Below, piece by piece: positions 1 to 13,238 of a stretch of DNA of 64,000 bases (the first letter of the stretch is position 1; each line of letters starts with the position of its first letter). This stretch comes from Vitrella brassicaformis CCMP3155. Lineage: Eukaryota; Protista; Chromerida. The stretch spans positions 62,001 through 126,000 of the forward strand of contig CDMY01000257.1 of NCBI GenBank assembly GCA_001179505.1, written 5' to 3'. The notes beneath the pieces were generated by a model. It worked only from the letters and a program-made list of their open reading frames with translations, ran no database searches and had not been told where the DNA came from. A program made the position numbers and the translations under genes.

Positions 1-3000
1 GGATCCAGCGATTACGGCCTGATGGCTGTCTCGTCATTTGAGCCCATCTTACGTCAGGAAAGCGTCGTCCGGCTTGAGGAAATCTTCATCGGCCCTCAAG
101 ACAAATGGCCTTCTGGCCAGGCATTGAATCTGCACGCCTGACAACAGACAGGTGGTGACCTTGCCTGTGAGTACTTGATGCAATACTGTTTGTCGTACCT
201 TCTTTCGGAATGTCGCAGACTTCTCTCAAGTGACCGCTTACTCTCGACTGGAAATCTATGCCGCCGCGGCCTTGCCTCGTATACATACGAAACCAACTGT
301 CGACGAATGTGGTGTTGTCCTCGGAATCCGCATTGTCAACCGACAGTAAGGGAAAGCTGAATAGTGACGCGTTAACGAATTCTCCATCCTCCAACTTGAC
401 AAGTGCCGTTCCATTCTTCCGGTAGGTCAGTGTCTTTGGGGGCAGCAAGCAGCTCTCAGCAGAGGTATTGCTGGGAGGAGAAATAATGCTGTACTGCATG
501 GTGCCGACAGGGGCACTTGACGTGAAGATCTGCACAAAGCAGTCAGCAGACATGCCCTCATTGATGCAGTGATGAGTGCGTAGCCGCATTACCAGTTCAG
601 GCGTGATTGACTTCGTGTCGTTGGTTCCAGCTCGGTTGAAGAAGTCTCTGATGGTGGGGAGATACGACGTAAGAGCCGGATAACTACCCTCTTCTCCCTG
701 AGGCTCAAAACTCAAGCCGCCGGCAAGAGTGCCTATATGATTGAGAGACACAAGCCGAGCACACAAAAGCGTACACGTACTCCTCTGAATGCGTCAAAGC
801 GTACCTTCAACGAACATCAGAGTGCCTTCGCACTCTTCGGGCGACACCTGGCGCACCGTCCCCTTGAAGTCAACATTGGCGAAGCCAACCTGTGGCTGGT
901 CATCATCCCCTGGGGCTCTCAGTGCGATCCGTCCATCCAGAGCCTCGACATCATATCTGATCCGCACTTGCAAGTCGGCGTCGTCTCCCTCGCAGCTGAA
1001 GGCTTGTACGAAGGCCTCTGTCCCACTGCCCCTTTCCCCCCGAGCCCGGAATATCCAAAGACAAGCGGTACTGTTAGGGTCCACTCCTGTGTCATTGACA
1101 TCTTCCGCGGGAAGGTCGGCAGCGGTACTGTCAGGGTCCACTCTTGGTTTGAAGTCGGTCATGCGGTAGCTTGATGGCTGGGCTGTACTGGAGGCATTCA
1201 GGACAATCTCAGGACATGCCTCGACTGACACAAGCAAAAGATATGACGAAGCAACAACAGAAAGCGACAGCAAGTCAGCTGTGAGTCATTCTGATTGCTT
1301 ACAGCATTCAAACCCAATCACACAGCGATTAGGCAGGACATCCCCGTCTCCCATGGCAAAATCGCTGAACCTCTCGGTGCAGTTGTTGATCGTTGGATCC
1401 TCACGTGTCGAGAACATCTCGACCGAAGCGTTGATCCGCTGCTCAGAGCCTCTCGTTATCCCCTTGCAAGTATGATTTCCATCGGGAAAGACGAAAACAC
1501 ACGTGTCAGCTCCAAGGAGTCCTTCGTTGGGCGCAAGAGCAACACTCACAACCTCGCCAGTTAAGCTGGGATCAACGAGGGCTTGAGCAGATAGGCCGTC
1601 ATCGCCAGGTTCAAAGTCGACGGGAAGGTTTGGGAGCCTTAATCCTCGGCAATTGGCCAAGACTGCAGACACACGCATCAACGGCAGGACAGTCAACCGT
1701 CTTTGCGTCTCAGCCAAGAGACAAGAAGAGAGAAACATGCTTGTCACGCGCCTAGCTGGTGTCATTGCCATGTACCTTCTCTTCCATCGATCAGATTTCC
1801 CAGCTGGCCCTTCACACAGCGGCAGCACACAGACAGACATATGTGTGGCTGCTTCTTGAGAATGAACGGAGTACCTTCAGAATCAGGTCAAGTGACACGC
1901 CCGTCTCCGCGCTGAAGAGGTCGAACGATCGAGGCCCCTTTGTATCGGACACATTTGAACATAGCACAGACTTATTTCCCACAGGGAACTTGACGTCTAA
2001 GTCCAAATCGTCCAAACACGACACGTCGTCATCCGTGATGACAAAGAATCTGTCTCCGATTGCGGCGCTGCTGAAAGACAGGTCTGGCGACTGCTCCGGC
2101 TTGTACAGGGGGGAGAAGATGGTCGGCAGGACCTCTCCTAGAAGGGCACGGCTGAAATCCTCGCGAAGAATTACAGATGTTCCAGCTTGTTCTGGACGGA
2201 CCTCAGTCACGCTGTCCTCACTCATATCGGCCGCACTCACACATATCTCACTGCACTCCCGAAATGCATCTTGATTGTCGAAAGCGAACTGACTGGCCTC
2301 CAGGGGGTTCTGACGATGTGAAGGGAAGCGAGACATATACGTGCATATGAGGTCCCCCTATCTACCAGTGCCGTACCTTTCGGATAATTTCGCCAGACGT
2401 CGTGTCCCTTCCATATCCTGAGGCAGCCAGTGCAAGGATGCCGCCCGCCTCGGTCTCGCCAGATGTCACTGAGAACGCTCGCTGGTTGAGCAGGACATCA
2501 CATTCATCAGGCACATCATCGGGGAATGTCAGGAGGCCGAGACTCGTGTTGGCTGAGGGCGAGAGAATGCCGATCGCCCGTGCAGTGACAAGATCGTCCT
2601 GTGTCTCGTTGCCGATGATGAGAATCCGCTGGGTCTGGTTGTACTCGAATTGCTGAGCGATGAGAGACTCCGACTCGTCCACGAAACCCGTCAAGGTGAC
2701 CTCGATCTGCGCCTCGATTCCCTCGCACACCGGGTTGCTGGCGTTCTCGACGACCAGCACGCCCTGAACTGTGGCAACTGCAGGCTGGAGGGCATTGCCG
2801 GCTCGATTGGAGCAGAGGCCGGTGTCGGGGCAGGTGAACTGGAGGGTGACGCTAACGCCCTCTGTCGTGTTGCACGACAGGTCCACAAAGAAGTCACCAA
2901 GTCCATTATCATCGTCACTCTTGCCCTGGATCCTCATGCAGCTCGACACGTTGGCGCCGGTGTTGTTGACTGTCGGCAGATAGGCGTCAGAGCTCACGTC

Positions 3001-3917
3001 TTCGAACAAATAAGTGCCGGGCACCAACTGAGCGAACGTCGCCTCTTGCGGAACAGGGGGCTCTTCGTTTGGCTTGACGCTCTGCTCTCGTGGGTTGGGC
3101 CCAATGTCTTCCCTTCTCTCGACGACGGGCAGGCTGCCCGCACAGTCAAAGGGCACGGCGAAGCGGTTGACGGCATTGAAGCACGGATCCAGCTCGGCCG
3201 GGAAACACAGAGACGATGGCTGGCCGCTGGCGACGCCCCTCGTTAAGCTGACATCGCCGCGCGAGAAGTTGGCCACGTCGCCGAACAGACCCACTTCCTC
3301 CTCGATGCAGTAGCAGAAGCGGGAGTCGCTCGTGCGGGCACAGATGGGCTTGTCCGACGGGCAACTGACAGACAGGCGCACGAAATTACGGTGCCATACT
3401 CATTGAGCAGTTCCTACCTTCCCAGTGCCGCAGTGCCCAGATCGGTGATGTTTGTGCCATTGACGCCGCTCGGCTCGCCACAGATAATGGACTGGTTGCC
3501 GCTGGTCGCAGTGACATTGCCGAAAGTATCCGAGTCCTCATTGTTCAGCGCATCTGTCTGTTGCTCCTTGAGTAGTCTTCTTGTGGTATTCTCATAGAAG
3601 CACTGGCCGAAGTTGCCCAGAGTGATGTTGTCGACGATGGGCAGCAGCGCATTGGCCTCGCACGCCGCGGCGATCTCACCGCGCGGGAGGACGGCTGAAG
3701 AAGCGAAAGGCATTCATATCCACTTGTTGTTCACGTGCCCTCTGTTGTGCTTACCCGGCTGGCAGTCTGCGTTTGTTTCGGTCGGCTGTCCGTCGTCGTC
3801 TGTTCTTGTGTTGTTGGTCAGACAGGCCGTCGTGAACTGAGCTACAGCACCCTTCCTCTCCCATTGGCTCAGCAGAACGGACAGCACCGCAGCCACAAGC
3901 CAAAAGGCTCTCCGCAT
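1..3917 (-). CDS. Large secreted acidic Cys-containing glycoprotein, copy A (multi-exon; 3' end probably runs off the window start)
   Basis: ATG at 3917 gives a signal-like leader MRRAFWLVAAVLSVLLSQWERKGAVA|QFTT. In-phase GT-AG introns checked at 3754-3695, 3417-3365 and 2376-2310 join ORF-track segments 3414-3713, 2362-3381 and 1812-2336. Further exons lie in 1286-1840, 794-1273 and 86-766, then GVQIQCLARRPFVLRADEDFLKPDDAFL with a GTAAG donor near 51, conserved in copy B. Many N-x-S/T sequons. About 1,100 aa in the window. No family recognised. Confidence 0.85.
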
Positions 3918-3981: not shown

Positions 3982-4361
3982 ATGAGGCTCTTCCTTTTTC
4001 TCTTCGTTTCCTCCGTCCTTCGGGCAGCTGGAGAGATGAGTGGTCTGCCGCAGACGCGTCGGGAGGGCGCGCCGGACCGTCGTTCAATCTTGGTTTCGTC
4101 TGCACAGGAGAGCTCCGGAGGACGTGCTGCTGAAGACGCCGCCCACCACGGCGCCCTTCTCGGCCAAGATGGTGGGCAGAGTACAACACCTACCATATTG
4201 CAACCCGACGATTGCGTGCATCAGATACCCTCCCTTCTCGTCGCCTGCAATTCGATGATGAGCCCAGGCCGATGCAGTTTCAAGGCATCTGCTGCACCGA
4301 TTGTATTCCTCTATACGGCACAAGTGCTTGTTACGACGGTAACTGTATTGAAAGTTGCTGA
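3982..4361 (+). CDS. Small secreted six-cysteine peptide precursor, copy A (108 aa; exons 3982-4171, 4225-4361)
   Basis: MRLFLFLFVSSVLRAAG leader. A phase-1 intron (4172-4224, GT...CATCAG) gives ...LGQD-DTLPSRRLQFDDEPRPMQFQGICCTDCIPLYGTSACYDGNCIESC*. Intron position, phase and Cys framework match the copies at 9725 and 12304. Confidence 0.85.
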
Positions 4362-5452: not shown

Positions 5453-8400
5453 TCACGATGATATCTCGCCGTCTTCCGTCTGCCCAGCAGGCGTCGGTCT
5501 CTGTCGCTCACCCGGGATAAAACAGAGGGTCAGAACAGGGCATAGCTGCTCAAGTCTGTGGGTCTTGCCATCGTCGGTGGGGGCCTCGACAAAGAGGGGA
5601 ATCGTCCGCACAATAAAGCCCCTAGGCCTGTCAAAAGCCTCTACTTTGCGCTCGACATCAGCAAGCGAGCAGCTGAGATTGAACCCGTCTGGCGACTGGA
5701 GCCGCAAAGCGGGATCAACGCCGTTTGGTGTCTGCACTTGGGCGACAGAGCTTGATGGACGGAGACACATACGGAACGGGAGCACACGGCAAAAGGACAG
5801 TGCTGATGTTCTCGCCATTTATGCGATATCTTACCTCAATTGGAAATCGTCGTCCGGCTTGAGGACAGTTTGATTGGCCTCCAGGACAAATGGCTGTCGG
5901 GGGAGACATTGGATCTGCATGCCTGATCGACCGAAAGGCACCCTTGCGTGTGAGCACGTAACGGATTACAACGTGTCGTACCTTTCTCAATATCACATAC
6001 TTCGCCCAACTTGCCACCTATTCTCGACCAAAAGTCTCCGCCGCGGCCTCGCCTCCCCGCAAACATTCGAACCTCGCTGTTGACAAGCATGGTGTCGTCC
6101 TCGGGTCCCGAATTGCCAATCGACAGAAAGGGAATGTTGAATGAAGCATCATTGGTTTCATCCTCCGGAGGTCCATACTTCCGGTGGGTCAGTCTCGCTG
6201 GGGGCTGCAAGCAGCTCTGAGGGGTATCGTCAGGGGCAGAAACAACGTCGTACTGCATAGAGCCGAACGAGGCACTTGACGTCCAGACCTGCATAAAACA
6301 GTCACTAGACATGCCCTCCTTGCTAATGTATACGTGTGGCAGTATTACTAGTTCAGGCAGGATCGTGTCATCGACTCCAGCTTCGAAAACGTCCCTAATC
6401 GTGAGGAGATACGTCCGACTCGAAACCGGACCAAGGGGCTCTTCTCCCTGAGGCTCAAAACCCAAGACGCCAGCAAGAGTGCCTGTGTGAAGCGACACAA
6501 GCCGGACACAGAGAGGCGTACACGTACTTCTCTGAATGCGTCAAAGCGTACCTTCAACGAACATCAAAACCCCTTCGCAGTCTGGGGGCCAAACCTGGCG
6601 CACCGTCCCCTTAAAGTCAACATTGGCGAAGCCAATTTCGGGCTCCTCGTCAAGGCGTCCATCGAGAGAGAGCGGGATCTGTCCATCCAGAGCCTCGACG
6701 TCGTATCTGATCCGCACTTGCAGGCCAGCCCCTTCCTCGTCCGGGTCGCAGCTGAAAAGGGCCCGAAAGTCCTCTGCACCTGGAGTGTTTTCTGTCTCGA
6801 GGCAGTAACTGACATCTGTGCCATTGACATTTTCCGCAGGAGGGTCAGTCAGGAAATAGCTCGATGGCTGGGCGGTCAATGGGGCGGTTAAGTTGACCTC
6901 AGGACATGCCTCAACTGACACAAAGCAAGAGAGACGAGGAAGCACGAACATGATGACACACCCAACGCGCCAGTGACTGAGCTGTGACTTATTCTGATTG
7001 CTTACAGCATTCAAAGCCAATCACACAGCGATTAGGCAGAAAATCCCCGTCCCCCATGGCAAAATCTCTGAGCCTCTCCCTGTACCTCTCGGTGCAGCTC
7101 TTGTTTGTTGGATCATTAGCAGTCGAGAAGATCTCGACAGAAGCGTTGATCCGCTGCTCAGAGCCTGTCGTTATCCCCTTGCAAGTATGATTTCCATCGG
7201 GAACGATGAAAACACACGTGTCATCACCAAGGAGTCCTTCGTTGGGAGCAAGAGCAACACTAACAACCTCGCCAAATGAGGTGGCATTAACGAGGGGTCG
7301 AGCATATAGGCCGTCATCTTCAGGTTCTAAGTCGACGGGGAGGTTTGGGAGCCTCAGTCCTCGGCAATTGGCCAAGACTGCAAACACACGCATCAATTGC
7401 AAAACGACCAGCCATCTCCATCTTCACCCCTCAGCCAAGAGAACTCAAGAAAGAAACACACATGCTTGTCACGCCACTGAGCGACTGCCTGGTGCCCGTA
7501 CCTTCTCTTCCATCGATCAGATTTCCCAGCTGGCCCTTCACACAGCGGCAGCACACAGACAGACACGTGTGTGTGGTGTGGCTCGAGAATGACTGAAGTA
7601 CCTTCAGAATCAAATCAAGCGACACGCCTGTCTCCGCGTTGAAGAGGTCGAACGATCGAGCATCAGACGCATTTGTACACAGAATGGACACACGGACTTG
7701 AGGGAACCTGACGGGCAAGTCTAACTCGTCCAAACACGAAAAGTCGTTTTCCGTGATGACAAAGAATCTGTCTCCGATTGCGGCGCTGCTGAAGGATAGG
7801 TCTGGCGACAGAGATTCTGGCTTGTAAAGGGGGGAGAAGATGGTCGGCAGGAGCTCTCCTTCGAGGGTACGGCTGAAATCCTCGCGAAGAATAAAAAATG
7901 ACGGAGCTTGTTCTGAACGGACGCCAGTAACATTGTCGTCACTCATATTCATCTCGTTCACACATATCTCACTGCACTCCCGGAATGCATCTCGATTATC
8001 GATAGCGAACTGACTGGCCTCCAGGGGGTTCTGACGATGTGAAGGGAAGCGAGACATACACGTGTATATGAGCTTCCCTTATCTAACAGTGCACTGACCT
8101 TTCGGAAAATTTCGTCAGATGCCGTGTTTCTTGCATATCCTGAGGCAGCCAGTGCAAGGATGCCGCCCGCCGCGGTCTCGCCAGATGTCACTGAGAACGC
8201 TCGCTGGTTGAGCAGGACATCACAATCACCAGGCACGTCATCGGGGAATGTCAGGAGGCCGAGACTCGTGTTGGCCGCGGGCGAGAGAATGCCGACAGCC
8301 CGTGCAGTGACAAGATCGTCCTGTGTCTCGTTGCCGATGATGAGAATCCGCTGGGTCTGGTTGTACTCGAACTGCTGGGCAATAAGAGACTCCGATTCGT

Positions 8401-9661
8401 CCACAAAGCCCGTCAAGGTGACTTCGATCTGCGCCTCAATTTCTTCGCATGCCGGGTTGCTGGCCTTCTCGACTTGCAGCACGCCTTGGATGGTGGCGAC
8501 GGCCGGTATCAGTTCGTTGCCAGTGCGATTCGAGCACAGGCCGGTATCGGGGCAGGTGAACTGGAGGGTCACGCTGACGCCCTCTGTCGTGTTGCACGAG
8601 AGGTCTAGGAAGAAGTCATCGAGCCCATTGCTGTCGTTCTTCTTGCCCTGAATCCTCATGCAGCTCGACACATTGCCAGTGCCCACGTTCTCGATGGTCT
8701 GCAAATAGGCGTCAGAGGGCACGTCTTCGAACAGGTAAGTGCCGGGCACCAGCTGGGCGAACGTCGATTCTTGCGGCACGGGAGGCGGGTCGTTTGGCTT
8801 GACGCTCTGCTCTCGTGGGTTGGGCCCAATGTCTTCCCTTCTCTCGACGACGGGCAGGCTGCCCGCACAGTCGAAGGGCACAGCGAAGCGGTTGACGGCA
8901 TTGAAGCACGGATCCAGCTCGGCCGGGAAACACAGGGACGATGGCTGGCCGCTGGCGACGCCCCTGACGAGGCTGACATCGCCGCGCGAGAAGTTGGCCA
9001 CCTCACCGAACAGACCAATGCTCTCCTCGATGCAGTAGCAGAAGCGGGAGTCGCTCGTGCGGGCACAGATGGGCTTGTCCGACGGACAACTGACAGTCAG
9101 GCACACACGGAAGAATGATGGTGCCATCACATGAGACGAGCAGTCCGTACCTTCCCAGTGCCGCAGTGCCGAGGGCCGCCGCCGTGATGTTGCCATCTTC
9201 CACGACACTGGGCTCTCCACAGATAATGGACTGATTCTCTCCTGATGCGCTCACGTCGCCGGCGGTCTCCTCATCGGTGGTCAGGGCATCTGTCTGTTGC
9301 TTCTTGAGCTCTTCCTGGGCGTTATCCTCATAGAAGCACTGGCCGAAGTTGCCGAGGTCGGGGTCGTCGACGATGGGCAGCAGCTCATTGGCCGCACAAC
9401 TCGAATACATGATCTCATCACCATCTTCGCCAGGGATCACGACTGAAGAAGCGAAAGCCATTCACAACAGCTTGTTGTTCACGTGCCTCTGTTGTGCTTA
9501 CTTGGCTGGCAGTCTGCGTTTGTTTCGGTCGGCCGTTCGTCGTCGTCTGTTCTGTTGTTGTTGCTCAGACAGGCCGTCGTGAACTGAGCCACAGTACCCC
9601 TCCTCGCCCATTGACTCAGCAGAACGGAAAGCAACGCCACAAGACGGAGGGCTCGCCGCAT
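5453..9661 (-). CDS. Large secreted acidic Cys-containing glycoprotein, copy B (tandem paralog of copy A; exact 3' end uncertain, could extend to about 4.9-5.3 kb)
   Basis: ATG at 9661: MRRALRLVALLSVLLSQWARRGTVA|QFTT. Exon-by-exon collinear with copy A (ORF-track segments 9003-9461, 7958-9220, 7431-8057, 6989-7402, 6541-7020, 5836-6498). A GTAAG donor near 5833 splices in phase into SSVAQVQTPNGVDPALRLQSPDGFNLSC... (5453-5818). Confidence 0.85.
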
Positions 9662-9724
9662 ACGAAAAAGCGCAACGCCCAAGAATTTACGTACATCACA
9701 GCCGTTGAGCTGTACAATAGCAAG
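9662..9724. promoter_or_regulatory. Very short divergent intergenic region shared by large gene B and peptide B
   Basis: 63 bp between the two ATGs, with the same conserved motif trio as 3918-3981. Confidence 0.55.
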
Positions 9725-10245
9725 ATGAGGCTGTTGGTCGTCTGCTTCGCTCTGTCCGCGCTCCGTGCGCGTTCCGGGTTGAATGCCCCATCACGTCAGG
9801 ACCCCCCGGCCCCCCCTCCGTCCGCGGCGGCGTCAGTGCAGGAAACCGCAGCAGTGCATCCGTTCACCGACGAGACCGACCGCGGTCGAGGCGCCACCGG
9901 TCAAAATGGTGAGCAGAGAACGACACAGAACCGGCACTGCTTCTGTGGACGTCTGGGTGCATGATGCGTCGTACAGATCGCCCTTTTCTCCGTCGTACGC
10001 AGTCCGACTCCGACAAGAAGGCCAAGCCAGAGCAGGATTATGACGAGGTCTGCTGCGATGATTGTGTGTATTACGCCCGAGTCAGTTTATGCGAATTGTA
10101 CTGCGATGATGACTTTTGCTGATGACGAGACATCCGCCTTCAGGCCAGGTTGTAGTGCCGCGTTGCGCAGAGATGTATGTACAGCCGTCTCTGTGACCTC
10201 CTGTGCTTCGTCACTGGTGAACTTTTTGTGTCGTGACTGACTGGG
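9676..10245 (+). repeat. Recent segmental duplication; partner at about 12261-12800
   Basis: Shared sequence starts at CGCCCAAGAATTTACGTACATCACAGCCGTTGAGCTGT (9676 and 12261). Near-identical through exon 1 and the intron. Homologous with indels in the 3' flank (e.g. CTTCAGGCCAGGTTGTAGTGCCGCGTT in both). Confidence 0.95.
9725..10122 (+). CDS. Small secreted six-cysteine peptide precursor, copy B (109 aa; exons 9725-9908, 9977-10122)
   Basis: MRLLVVCFALSALRA leader. Phase-1 intron 9909-9976 (GTGAGC...GTACAG). Spliced C-terminus: DRPFLRRTQSDSDKKAKPEQDYDEVCCDDCVYYARVSLCELYCDDDFC*. Confidence 0.88.
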
Positions 10246-10742
10246 GCACACACACACGGGCAGCGACATTGTCTCACCCATGACTGTCTCACCCATGAAC
10301 ACGCAGCTTGTTTCGCCGAAAGCACGCATTAATCTCTACTAGACATCTACTTATGGACAGCGCAGTGGAGAAAGACGTGTATAGGTCGTCGACGTCAAGT
10401 GTGGGCACACAGTGACAACTGCCGTGCACCGCGTGACCCCTCACTAATGCGTCAATCAACGGATGCCGTCGGTCAGCCGACGAAGACACGCTCTCGAGCG
10501 TGTCGATGTGCTGCTTGCTTATGTGACAATCAAATCGCACACACAACAGCCAACGGACACGCAGAAATGCAAGCGCTCGCCGTCGGCGTGCTGTTCTGTA
10601 TACTCACACATGGGGCAATCCACCAGAGGGGTGTTCCACTGTCCGAAGCACGTGTCGCAAAAGGCTGACATCGACACAACAACACGACATACACGGACGC
10701 AGAAACAGACAAGTGGTCGACACGTGGTGGTGGCTGACCCAC

Positions 10743-12197
10743 CTAAGTGTTTGCAGAAGGAGTTGGGTTGGCTGCCCGACAGTCCATCGTCTGACGAGCG
10801 TGTGGCCCTATGTTTGCTGGCTGGCTCCGTCTCCCCTTAGCGGCCAGACCATCGATGATCGCCTCACGCCGCGCTACCTGAGAGACACACCACCGACAGA
10901 CCCGTCCAGCGGTGCAGACACGCCATCACTCGACCACTGTGTGCGCGTGCGCGTCCGCACCTCCGCCTGCAGTCGACTCTTGTCCTCGGCGAGGCGGCTG
11001 CTCTCCCCCGTGGCCTCCCTCACCTCTTCCACGAGCTTCTCATTCATCCCCCTCTCCCTCTCTACGTCGCTCTCCAGCTCCTTCACCCGCCCAATCAGCA
11101 TGTCGGTCGCCCTCACCCGAAGGGTCTCGTACACACGGGCAGTCTTGTGCGTTGTCTTGTCTTGTCTTGTCCTGTCTTATCTTGTCCTGTGCTGTTTTGT
11201 CGGTCGGGGGTGGCTCACGGGTCAGGGTGGTTGGCTTTGAGTTCCTTGATCTGCTCTTCAGCGTCTACCAGGCGCTTCTCGGCGCCATGCTTCTCCTCCA
11301 AACACCTGAACCAAGCATAGCACATGGATAGACAGAAATGTGCCCAGACACACGCAGGCGAGCGCACCTGTTGTATTTGTCGTTGATGTCGGTCGCGTAT
11401 TGCATCAGCCGCTCACTATCCCGGATCTGCTGCTTCAGCTGCGACTGGCTCGTCGCGCAGTAGCCAGACAAATCGCCACAATTCCATACAGACAGCACAC
11501 AGCACAACAGATGCCGACAAGTCACGAGCTGGTGCCTGTGTGGGGTGAGGGAGGTAGCTGTCGATTCGGTCTTTGAGCTCCTGTATCTCCCTCTGCTTCT
11601 CGCGCAGCTTCCGGCTCAGCTGCAGGTTCTCGTCCCTCAGCTCGACATGCTCCATCAGGTTGCGACTGTCCTCCGTGCGCATAGGTACTAGTAGGGGGTA
11701 AGGAATGGGCTCACTGAACACACACAAACATCACACAAGGCATACACACGCCACCCAGCCCATCGCGTTTTGCCGTGTTTGTTACCTGACAGCGGCCTCT
11801 TCCATCGAGCTATCGCCAGACAGGTTATCCAACAGCAGACTGCTACCGCGCCCCACCGCCACGTCACCGCTACCGTCACACCCGTTCTCGCCCTCCCGCC
11901 CCTGCTCCTCCCACCTTGCCTCTCCCTCCTCTCTCCCTGCGCTTCTCTTCCTCCATACTCGCTATTCGTCTCGTCCTGTGCCGCCACAGACGCCTCTTCC
12001 TGCTCGCGCGAGCTGCTGCTGCTGCCGTTGAGCAGCGCCTCACGCAGCGAGAGGGACTGTGCAGCAGGTGGGATCCCATTGTTGCAGCCTTCTTGTTCTC
12101 TGATTGAGCCGAAACAGGCTCCCAGCCGCCCCGCACCCGAAGGGGGCGTCTCACGGTCGTTGGCCGAGGCCGGCATGCTGCTGCTGGAAAGCCGCAA
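10743..12197 (-). CDS. Multi-exon coiled-coil protein of unknown function
   Basis: Exons encode heptad-rich E/K/R/L segments: NLMEHVELRDENLQLSRKLREKQREIQELKDRID, SQSQLKQQIRDSERLMQY, LEEKHGAEKRLVDAEEQIKELK, LIGRVKELESDVERERGMNEKLVEEVRE, RLQAE|VARREAIIDGL. They are separated by GT-AG introns. Start is 12197 or 12176. Confidence 0.7.
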
Positions 12198-12303
12198 CCG
12201 GTTTCGGGCAAGCAGGAGACAAGCAAAAGTGCTTCAATGAACAAGAGAGCTCCTCGGTGCCGCCCAAGAATTTACGTACATCACAGCCGTTGAGCTGTGC
12301 AAG

Positions 12304-12704
12304 ATGAGGCTGTTGGTCGTCTGCTTCGCTCTGTCCGCGCTCCGTGCGCGTTCCGGGTTGAGTGCCCCATCACGTCAGGACCCCCCGGCCCCCCCTCCGT
12401 CCGCGGCGGCGTCAGTGCAGGAAACCGCAGCAGTGCATCCGTTCACCGACGAGACCGACCGCGGTCGAGGCGCCACCGGTCAAAATGGTGAGCAGAGAAC
12501 GACACAGAACCGGCACTGCTTCTGTGGACGTCTGGGTGCATGATGCGTCGTACAGATCGCCCTCTTCTCCGTCGCACGCAGTCTGACTCCGACAAGAAGA
12601 CCAAGCCAGAGCAGGATTATGACGAGGTCTGCTGCGATGATTGTTTTTATTACAGAAATGTTCGTGACTGTTACGATCAGTGCAATGATGACTTTTGCCG
12701 ATGA
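12304..12704 (+). CDS. Small secreted six-cysteine peptide precursor, copy C (110 aa; exons 12304-12487, 12556-12704), orphan copy
   Basis: Exon 1 differs from copy B by one base (N20S) and the 68-bp intron is identical. Spliced C-terminus: DRPLLRRTQSDSDKKTKPEQDYDEVCCDDCFYYRNVRDCYDQCNDDFCR*. Confidence 0.88.
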
Positions 12705-13238
12705 CGAGACAGCCAACCCGTCTTCAGGCCAGGTTGTAGTGCCGCGTTCAGTGCCGCATGCATTGTCACTGGTGAATTTTTTGTCTTGTGACTGGCTGGG
12801 ACGCCCACCGACGGGCAGGGACCTTGTGAAATGCTGAACACAAACCCGTTTCGTGTTGTGGTGTGGCTCTGGTGACTTCTGCTGCTGGTTTGCGGACCGT
12901 GCTTCGTGAGCCGTCAGTGCGTGAAGCGACACCTCACTTTGTGAGGCAATGAGTTTCTCTCCACGTGCGTTGAGAGAGACAGTGACATTCGAGATATACC
13001 GGAGAGAGCGGCCTGTACAGCACGACCAGACGGTGCAGCAGCGGTGTGTGTGGACAGGGAACCAAGTACACATGAGATGAGGAGCGGTGTATACACAATT
13101 GTGTCAACAGTCATCATGCCAGCAGTTGGTGCTTTGGCACGGTGATAGATTCTGACATACACAAAATGCTACCGTGAGGCACTGGCAGACAGACAGACCT
13201 AGTTCGCTCTCTAGAGCCCAACAGGATGTCTGTGTCCT

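Follow-up and report, generated by a model that had tools for sequence, protein, structure and literature searches.

How can two neighbouring genes be nearly identical through their 5′ untranslated region (UTR), first exon and intron, and yet differ almost like random sequences over a few tens of bases of their second exon? This question is raised by two small genes, here called B and C, in a 64,000 bp window of the genome of the chromerid Vitrella brassicaformis CCMP3155 (contig CDMY01000257.1, or C257, positions 62,001–126,000 of the forward strand; the assembly comprises 72.7 Mb in 1064 contigs). Positions given without a contig or locus name are those of this window. Both genes are predicted to encode secreted, cysteine-rich peptides. 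The answer that we consider probable is that B and C are real, transcribed, lineage-specific paralogues whose mosaic relationship arose from gene conversion together with positive selection on the loops between the cysteines.

A 40 bp island of divergence between genes B and C

Gene B lies on the plus strand at 9725–10122 and corresponds to public protein CEL97852.1 (P0002, 109 amino acids). Its exon 1 (9725–9908; 61 codons plus one nucleotide) translates to a signal peptide and pro-region. After a 68 nt phase 1 intron with GT..AG ends (9909–9976), exon 2 (9977–10122) supplies the end of the pro-region with its Arg-Arg (RR) site, a mature peptide of cysteine pattern CC-x2-C-x8-C-x3-C-x4-C, and the stop codon. 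Gene C, also on the plus strand (12304–12704), has the same organization: exon 1 (12304–12487) matches public protein CEL97855.1 (P0001), the intron (12488–12555) is again 68 nt long, phase 1 and GT..AG, and exon 2 (12556–12704) has the cysteine framework of B and one extra C-terminal arginine, since the stop codon of B is CGA in C. Both precursors are predicted to have a hydrophobic N-terminus of the signal peptide type, a Pro/Ala-rich pro-region, the RR site and an acidic peptide with six cysteines. The public model of C (CEL97855.1, 92 amino acids) treats 54 nt of the loops (12627–12680) as an intron; an RNA contig (12615–12952) runs unspliced across them.

The initial annotation had compared B and C by hand, and all of its counts were reproduced by script. 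Exon 1 and the intron together differ by one base in 252 (none of it in the 68 nt of the intron) and the first 89 nt of exon 2 differ by four, whereas 22 of the 54 nt from Cys3 to Cys6 (10066–10119 in B) differ, changing 9 of the 15 non-cysteine residues. Two codon changes in the loops are purely synonymous (GTC/GTT and TGC/TGT), all six cysteines are retained, and a 27 nt run in the 3′ UTR is identical. The 22 loop differences are all confined to 40 nt, 10066–10105 in B and 12645–12684 in C, an island that is 55% different; outside its conserved YY and cysteine codons 22 of 28 bases differ, which is near random and saturated. Upstream of the island a tract runs from the 5′ UTR to the Cys3 codon (9677–10065 in B and 12262–12644 in C, where homology with B starts abruptly at 12262), in which 6 of 383 aligned nt differ and there is one 6 nt insertion/deletion (indel). 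Downstream of it the last four codons, the stop codon and the proximal 3′ UTR, including the 27 nt run, form a second near-identical block (10106–10164 in B; 3 differences in 59 nt and a 5 nt indel), and farther out the 3′ UTRs differ at 20 of 82 positions and by a 26–29 nt indel. The island is thus far more divergent than its immediate flanks (22/40 versus 9/442; Fisher test, p = 3e-20), and it is also more divergent than the unconverted 3′ UTR (22/40 versus 20/82, or 24%; p = 0.0012). An excess over adjacent unconverted non-coding sequence is not expected of a coding segment that has merely escaped conversion. No second copy or donor of either the B or the C island is present elsewhere in the assembly.

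A mosaic of this sort might also be an assembly artefact, with B and C being alleles or a collapsed and re-expanded repeat and their 5′ near-identity an assembler chimera, a danger for which the initial annotation had left room. For the copy check, contigs of four public runs were placed on 9400–13100. The shared part is assembled only once in these runs, as one collapsed contig (one run carries the B variants, 12362 G>A and a GCAATA insertion), and its depth in run X1 (8.35, against 7.3–8.1 in the unique flanks) falls short of a clear doubling, both of which could be taken to favour an artefact. In X3, on the other hand, the shared part is covered about 1.7 times as deeply as the flanks; contig depth is not copy number, and as the two runs disagree on a doubling, depth was not used. 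Stronger points against an artefact are that DNA runs X1 and X3, which come from different studies, each have a B-specific contig (10036–10660) and a C-specific contig (12615–13100 and beyond), that each of these overlaps the shared part by k-1 bases so that both islands are joined to it, and that another contig links the unique upstream flank of C with the shared part (12012–12298). The contigs therefore bridge both this flank and the differing downstream flanks of B and C. The two genes also differ by indels in their 5′ and 3′ UTRs.

Run X11 is RNA, since it has joints at introns of the intervening minus-strand gene. One of its joints (12486 to 9976) splices exon 1 to exon 2 at the predicted bases, and its contigs traverse the loops of B (10036–10517) and of C (12615–12952), so both versions are transcribed. 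An independent witness is a 601 nt contig in X13, a marine-sediment metagenome (2025), which spans the unique upstream flank of C, the gene and the 3′ UTR (12166–12712 and 10133–10185). Of the 19 substitutions that it carries, five or more lie in 17 nt of loop 1 (12641–12657), together with an indel, with changes at 12641, 12645–12647 and 12657; this is a hint of loop diversification from beyond the culture. This contig joins the C upstream flank and a gene with different loop 1 codons to a B-like 3′ UTR without the deletion of C, and it implies that relatives of Vitrella with other peptide versions occur in sediment. With both versions found separately in two DNA runs and in RNA, mis-assembly of B and C is very unlikely, and we give the artefact explanation almost no credit.

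Gene conversion and selection on the mature peptide

Two paralogues in the same contig complete the set that was compared. Gene A (plus strand, 3982–4361; exon 1 3982–4171, intron 4172–4224, exon 2 4225–4361) has an exon structure like that of B and C and the framework CC-x2-C-x8-C-x4-C-x3-C; a word-based protein search with its exon 1 returned no match among public proteins of 35–110 amino acids. Gene D, the fourth paralogue, which pairs with A, is encoded by the minus strand at a distance of 50 kb in the upstream direction (L015 2236–1884). Its predicted splicing is exactly that of a database protein (P0003, 75 amino acids), which begins at an internal Met and so has no signal peptide. All four peptides fit CC-x2-C-x8-C-x3/4-C-x2-4-C, and the mature peptides predicted for A, B and C have a marked negative charge (net −5 to −8).

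The initial annotation had read the conserved leader of B and C as part of a signature of selection, and had named gene conversion of the 5′ part as an alternative or contributing explanation. It is the latter that the data support. None of the 50.7 synonymous sites of exon 1 differs between B and C, and since these silent sites are as identical as the intron, the identity of the leader reflects conversion, not constraint. B differs from A by 34–39% in exon 1 and the intron (about 39% in exon 1), and the synonymous divergence (dS) of A and D exon 1 is 0.26. The alignment of the four genes has 217 ungapped polymorphic sites. In a Sawyer-type permutation test on these, B and C agree at 85 such sites in succession (p < 1e-4), and A and D at 26 in the 3′ UTR (p = 0.0056). 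The B/C tract starts where homology starts (9677/12262) and stops at the Cys3 codon. Where the leader has not been converted, as in exon 1 of A and D, it is almost neutral, with a ratio of nonsynonymous to synonymous divergence (dN/dS, or omega) of about 0.6 (0.64). The apparent conservation of the B/C leader is an artefact of conversion and does not reflect selection of the kind that preserves conotoxin leaders. The large secreted-protein genes that neighbour A and B (see below) have proportions of synonymous differences (pS) that go from 0.03 to 0.51 between adjacent 40-codon windows (omega 0.24–0.68); this patchy pattern in the sequences indicates gene conversion, which is common in the locus.

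Could conversion alone account for the mosaic? The loops would in that case be those of old paralogues that kept their old divergence, neutral or relaxed apart from the cysteines, and no positive selection would be needed. Conversion is demonstrably active in the locus, and high divergence blocks heteroduplex spread, so that the end of the tract at the island would be accounted for. The B/C loops themselves agree with such a history. In the dN/dS calculations, which were made exon by exon with the split codon excluded, the Nei-Gojobori method gives 4.3 synonymous differences on 8.7 sites and 17.7 nonsynonymous differences on 45.3 sites, so that pS (0.50) is as high as its nonsynonymous counterpart pN (0.39) and omega is 0.67. 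Maximum likelihood gives an omega of 0.19 with t = 2.1 substitutions per codon and the transition/transversion ratio (kappa) at its lower bound of 0.3, and the changes show no bias by codon position (9:4:9). These sites are saturated, however, so the dN/dS of the B/C loops is uninformative, and the excess of the island (55%) over the adjacent unconverted non-coding sequence (24%) is not what conversion alone predicts.

The pair A and D is younger than B and C and hence informative. A nucleotide-guided alignment of its exon 2 contains 34 codons, in which there are 20.5 nonsynonymous and 0.5 synonymous differences (dN 0.31, dS 0.024). The maximum-likelihood omega is at its upper bound, and a likelihood-ratio test against omega = 1 gives 13.2 (p = 3e-4), a value that none of 400 parametric bootstraps reaches. 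Exon 2 and exon 1 (0.64) differ in omega, with a likelihood-ratio statistic of 13.1, and the cysteine domain alone gives 7.2 against omega = 1 (bootstrap p ~0.02). The 21 differences in exon 2 fall at the three codon positions in the ratio 10:10:1 (p ~0.002), and only 1 of the first 57 nt of the 3′ UTR differs. This deficit of third-position changes cannot have been produced by relaxed constraint or by a mutational process that is blind to the reading frame, and neutral divergence cannot yield so lopsided a count of nonsynonymous and synonymous changes. We therefore regard conversion without positive selection as unlikely. As judged from exon 2 of A and D, the mature peptide of the family is under positive diversifying selection. 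The 3′ UTRs of A and D are 92–98% identical over about 400 nt.

A different possibility is that a local mutational mechanism, such as targeted hypermutation, error-prone multi-nucleotide repair or replacement from a short donor, scrambled the island. Codons of B and C often differ at two or three positions, transversions dominate (the kappa bound mentioned above), the 22 differences in 28 bases outside the YY and cysteine codons are near random, and A and D have six tandem double substitutions, all of which such a mechanism might leave behind. Yet neither island has a donor in the assembly, the cysteine codons within the island are unchanged, and mutation that takes no account of the reading frame should not avoid third positions as the A/D changes do. 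A purely mutational origin of the island thus seems highly improbable.

Several observations weigh against conversion plus positive selection. By neither method does the dN/dS of B and C exceed one. The A/D result comes from 34 codons in one alignment only, and omega is only about 1.2 when measured against the dS of exon 1 (0.26) rather than the local dS. Adjacent double substitutions, which can inflate omega, are present in six of the 15 codons changed in this pair. The very young tandem pair H1/H2 (97–98% identical), whose mature parts are separated by two amino acid and two synonymous changes plus a 27 nt in-frame indel that adds two cysteines, has no excess of amino acid change. The A/D double substitutions (4227–4358 versus L015 1988–1887) include GAT/AGT, GAC/AGC, ATT/TAT and AAC/GGC, and five of the six are at codon positions 1 and 2. 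The diversifying selection proposed by the initial annotation thus holds for the mature peptide through A and D, and the comparison of B with C on which it had been based does not bear it out. The loops of that pair have an omega below one, but at saturated sites, and their divergence exceeds that of the unconverted 3′ UTR.

Conversion together with selection on the loops probably operated as follows. Each of the two-exon genes specifies a precursor with a predicted signal peptide, a pro-region in which an RR site is usual, and a mature CC-C-C-C-C peptide of 24–42 residues. Conversion has homogenized B and C from the 5′ UTR to the Cys3 codon, and a short near-identical block comes after the last loop. 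The 40 nt loop island has diverged to near-randomness, either because it was never converted or because converted versions were not retained.

Further family members and the partner genes

The family has at least nine members in V. brassicaformis, most of which lie head-to-head with a gene for a large secreted protein. The partner gene of A is on the minus strand at 57–3917 (3′ end approximate), with its start codon 64 nt from that of A, and a paralogous partner of B is on the minus strand at 5836–9661 (3′ end likewise approximate), with start codons 63 nt apart. The minus-strand partners of A, B and D are all 63–64 nt from the peptide start codons and are predicted to bear signal peptides. 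The partner gene family has at least 12–20 paralogues in the genome (on C257, C770, C297, C502, C764, C481 and others). The partner gene of B, searched as six exon-sized pieces, matched no Pfam family at E ≤ 1.

Regular-expression scans on the head-to-head side of partner-gene paralogues found five additional small genes, 850–1230 nt from the large exon of the partner. They lie on C297 at about 125.8 kb, on C770 at about 65.9 kb, and on C257 at about 136.8, 128.5 and 127.0 kb (in local coordinates, L044 near 5838 on the plus strand, L047 near 4001 and L043 near 2903 on the minus strand, and two copies in L042 on the minus strand). Two of the five form the tandem pair H1/H2. Four have a signal peptide of the MRFLW type; the exception is the copy at 136.8 kb, for which an exon 1 was not recognized. 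All five finish with CC(C)-x2-3-C-x4-13-C-x3-C-x2-3-C right before the stop codon. Their loops range from 2 to 13 residues, so that loop length and sequence turn over almost entirely on a constant scaffold, while the partner proteins remain 76–91% identical.

Gene C is the only one that lacks an adjacent partner; upstream of it, on the minus strand, is an unrelated kind of gene, which is spliced. The motif CAAGAATTTAC is common to the tiny upstream regions of the peptide genes on their plus-strand side (9680–9690 at B, 3931 at A and 12265 at C) and is also present at D. It lies within the 63–64 nt between the divergent start codons and is the first shared sequence at the duplication boundary of C, which is still transcribed; the motif may be a core promoter element. 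Conserved 3′ UTR blocks, GTGACTGACTGGG for one, recur in all four genes (4541, 10233 and 12788 in A, B and C), although the coding parts of the A/D type can hardly be aligned with those of the B/C type. Between B and C, at about 10450–12180, there is a spliced minus-strand gene for a coiled-coil-like protein, four of whose introns appear in the RNA as CT..AC joints (10518–10607, 10665–10742, 10876–10958 and 11303–11364). One RNA contig passes from the loops and 3′ UTR of B into this gene and over its intron, which means that the two transcripts, which converge, abut or overlap.

Relatives and possible function

Searches for relatives were made with single exons or with the database proteins P0001–P0003. 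Neither exon of A, B or C matched a Pfam family at E ≤ 10, nor did full-length B, apart from the noise described below. A word-based search of 5.8 billion clusters with the exon 1 frame of B returned only the Vitrella proteins themselves, and a HMMER profile of exon 2 found only the protein of D among 1.84 billion representatives. The ESM Atlas contained no usable feature match, and its structure rows were all below a template modelling (TM) score of 0.5. In the Joint Genome Institute (JGI) metagenomes, a two-anchor pattern and a 21-mer of the conserved 3′ UTR block each gave zero contigs. AlphaFold2 models are of low confidence (predicted local distance difference test, pLDDT, 55 and 61) and have two short helices only; Foldseek found no match to them in the PDB. 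UniRef labels B as an "SREBP regulating gene protein", but full-length B has no such Pfam match, only noise (E 0.07–0.18) to unrelated models, and the label appears to be spurious, transferred automatically to a sequence rich in cysteine.

Against PDB sequences the family profile had two matches, both below significance, to a crustacean hormone-like peptide (E = 0.27) and to the pheromone En-6 of Euplotes nobilii (E = 0.28). D alone matched only En-1, also below significance (E = 1.3), and A alone had no match. The local motif CC-x2-C-x8-C with G-x2-A-C is common to D and the family profile and to the C-terminal half of En-6 and En-1. Weak similarity to Euplotes pheromones recurs at 4290–4358 and in D exon 2 (L015). 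The Euplotes match is a weak lead, suggested by sequence, and does not amount to membership. Euplotes pheromones are water-borne, disulfide-rich protist proteins made as pre-pro precursors, in which conservation is limited to the cysteines and the inter-cysteine segments change and extend (PMC9542385, PMC9229436). The Vitrella peptides resemble them as disulfide-rich alveolate peptides with pre-pro precursors, secretion and disulfides being predicted from sequence. The Euplotes pheromones, however, are alleles of one mating-type locus, whereas in the one Vitrella assembly the variants are dispersed or tandem paralogues, most with a large secreted-protein gene. The Euplotes pre and pro segments are highly conserved, whereas those of Vitrella are almost neutral (omega ~0.6) and identical only where converted. 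The fold of the Euplotes pheromones is an up-down-up bundle of three helices with disulfide bonds; the low-confidence models of the Vitrella peptides have two short helices.

In Brassica, SCR/SP11 with SRK is a linked, hypervariable ligand/partner gene pair. The Vitrella cassettes are similar in having a small secreted cysteine-rich peptide with variable loops beside a gene for a large secreted or surface glycoprotein, as one inherited unit. They differ in that the Vitrella partner has no recognizable domain or kinase, that there are many paralogous cassettes rather than haplotypes, and that C is partnerless. The CC-C-C-C-C pattern of the Vitrella peptides is that of conotoxin framework IV. 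The signal/pro/mature architecture is also that of conotoxins, which have hypervariable inter-cysteine loops, strictly kept cysteines and position-specific cysteine codons (PMC3823881); in all four Vitrella genes the codons of Cys1–3 and Cys6 are TGC TGC TGT ... TGC. Vitrella is a photosynthetic alveolate, however, and its peptides have other loop spacing and a leader that is not conserved across the family. That they are conotoxins was rejected, since there is no precursor homology (no Pfam family at E ≤ 10, and the profile search found only a member of the family itself). Plant defensins and NCR peptides are multigene families that have been shaped by gene conversion and diversifying selection (PMC5731061, PMC7230169). 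The Vitrella genes share with them patchily homogenized flanks and leader and amino acid-changing divergence in the mature cysteine-rich part, but they have no homology to them, and the Vitrella peptides are mostly strongly anionic where typical defence peptides are cationic.

The peptides would be secreted, disulfide-bonded ligands whose loops may form the contact surface, and their most likely role is in extracellular recognition, in concert with the large secreted protein whose gene faces theirs across a shared promoter region of 64 nt. The function we favour, if with less than even confidence, is that of a secreted ligand for recognition that acts jointly with the neighbouring protein, because of the Euplotes hint, the anionic charge and the conserved cassette. 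A defence or allelopathic peptide seems less likely than this, and the net charge is atypical of membrane-active defence peptides. More specifically, peptide and partner might be a co-expressed, co-evolving ligand/partner pair for cell-cell recognition (mating type, gamete or self/non-self), with new specificities arising through cassette duplication, conversion and loop selection, a proposal that we regard as speculative and rather doubtful.

Chromerids are free-living photosynthetic sisters of the Apicomplexa, and V. brassicaformis is a coral-reef alga. To our knowledge, almost nothing has been reported of chromerid signalling, mating or defence, and next to nothing of the sexual cycle. The genes described here form a hidden orphan family of expressed, predicted secreted peptides that are candidate recognition or defence molecules in this group. 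Among its four closest members, A to D, the public annotation mis-models C and truncates D, and A was not found among public proteins; automated gene models can delete precisely the important part of such genes. The family would also provide a compact natural example of conversion and diversifying selection carving out a 40-base hypervariable island. Should the peptides and their partners prove to be ligand/partner pairs, they would represent a pheromone-type system in the closest photosynthetic relatives of the apicomplexan parasites.

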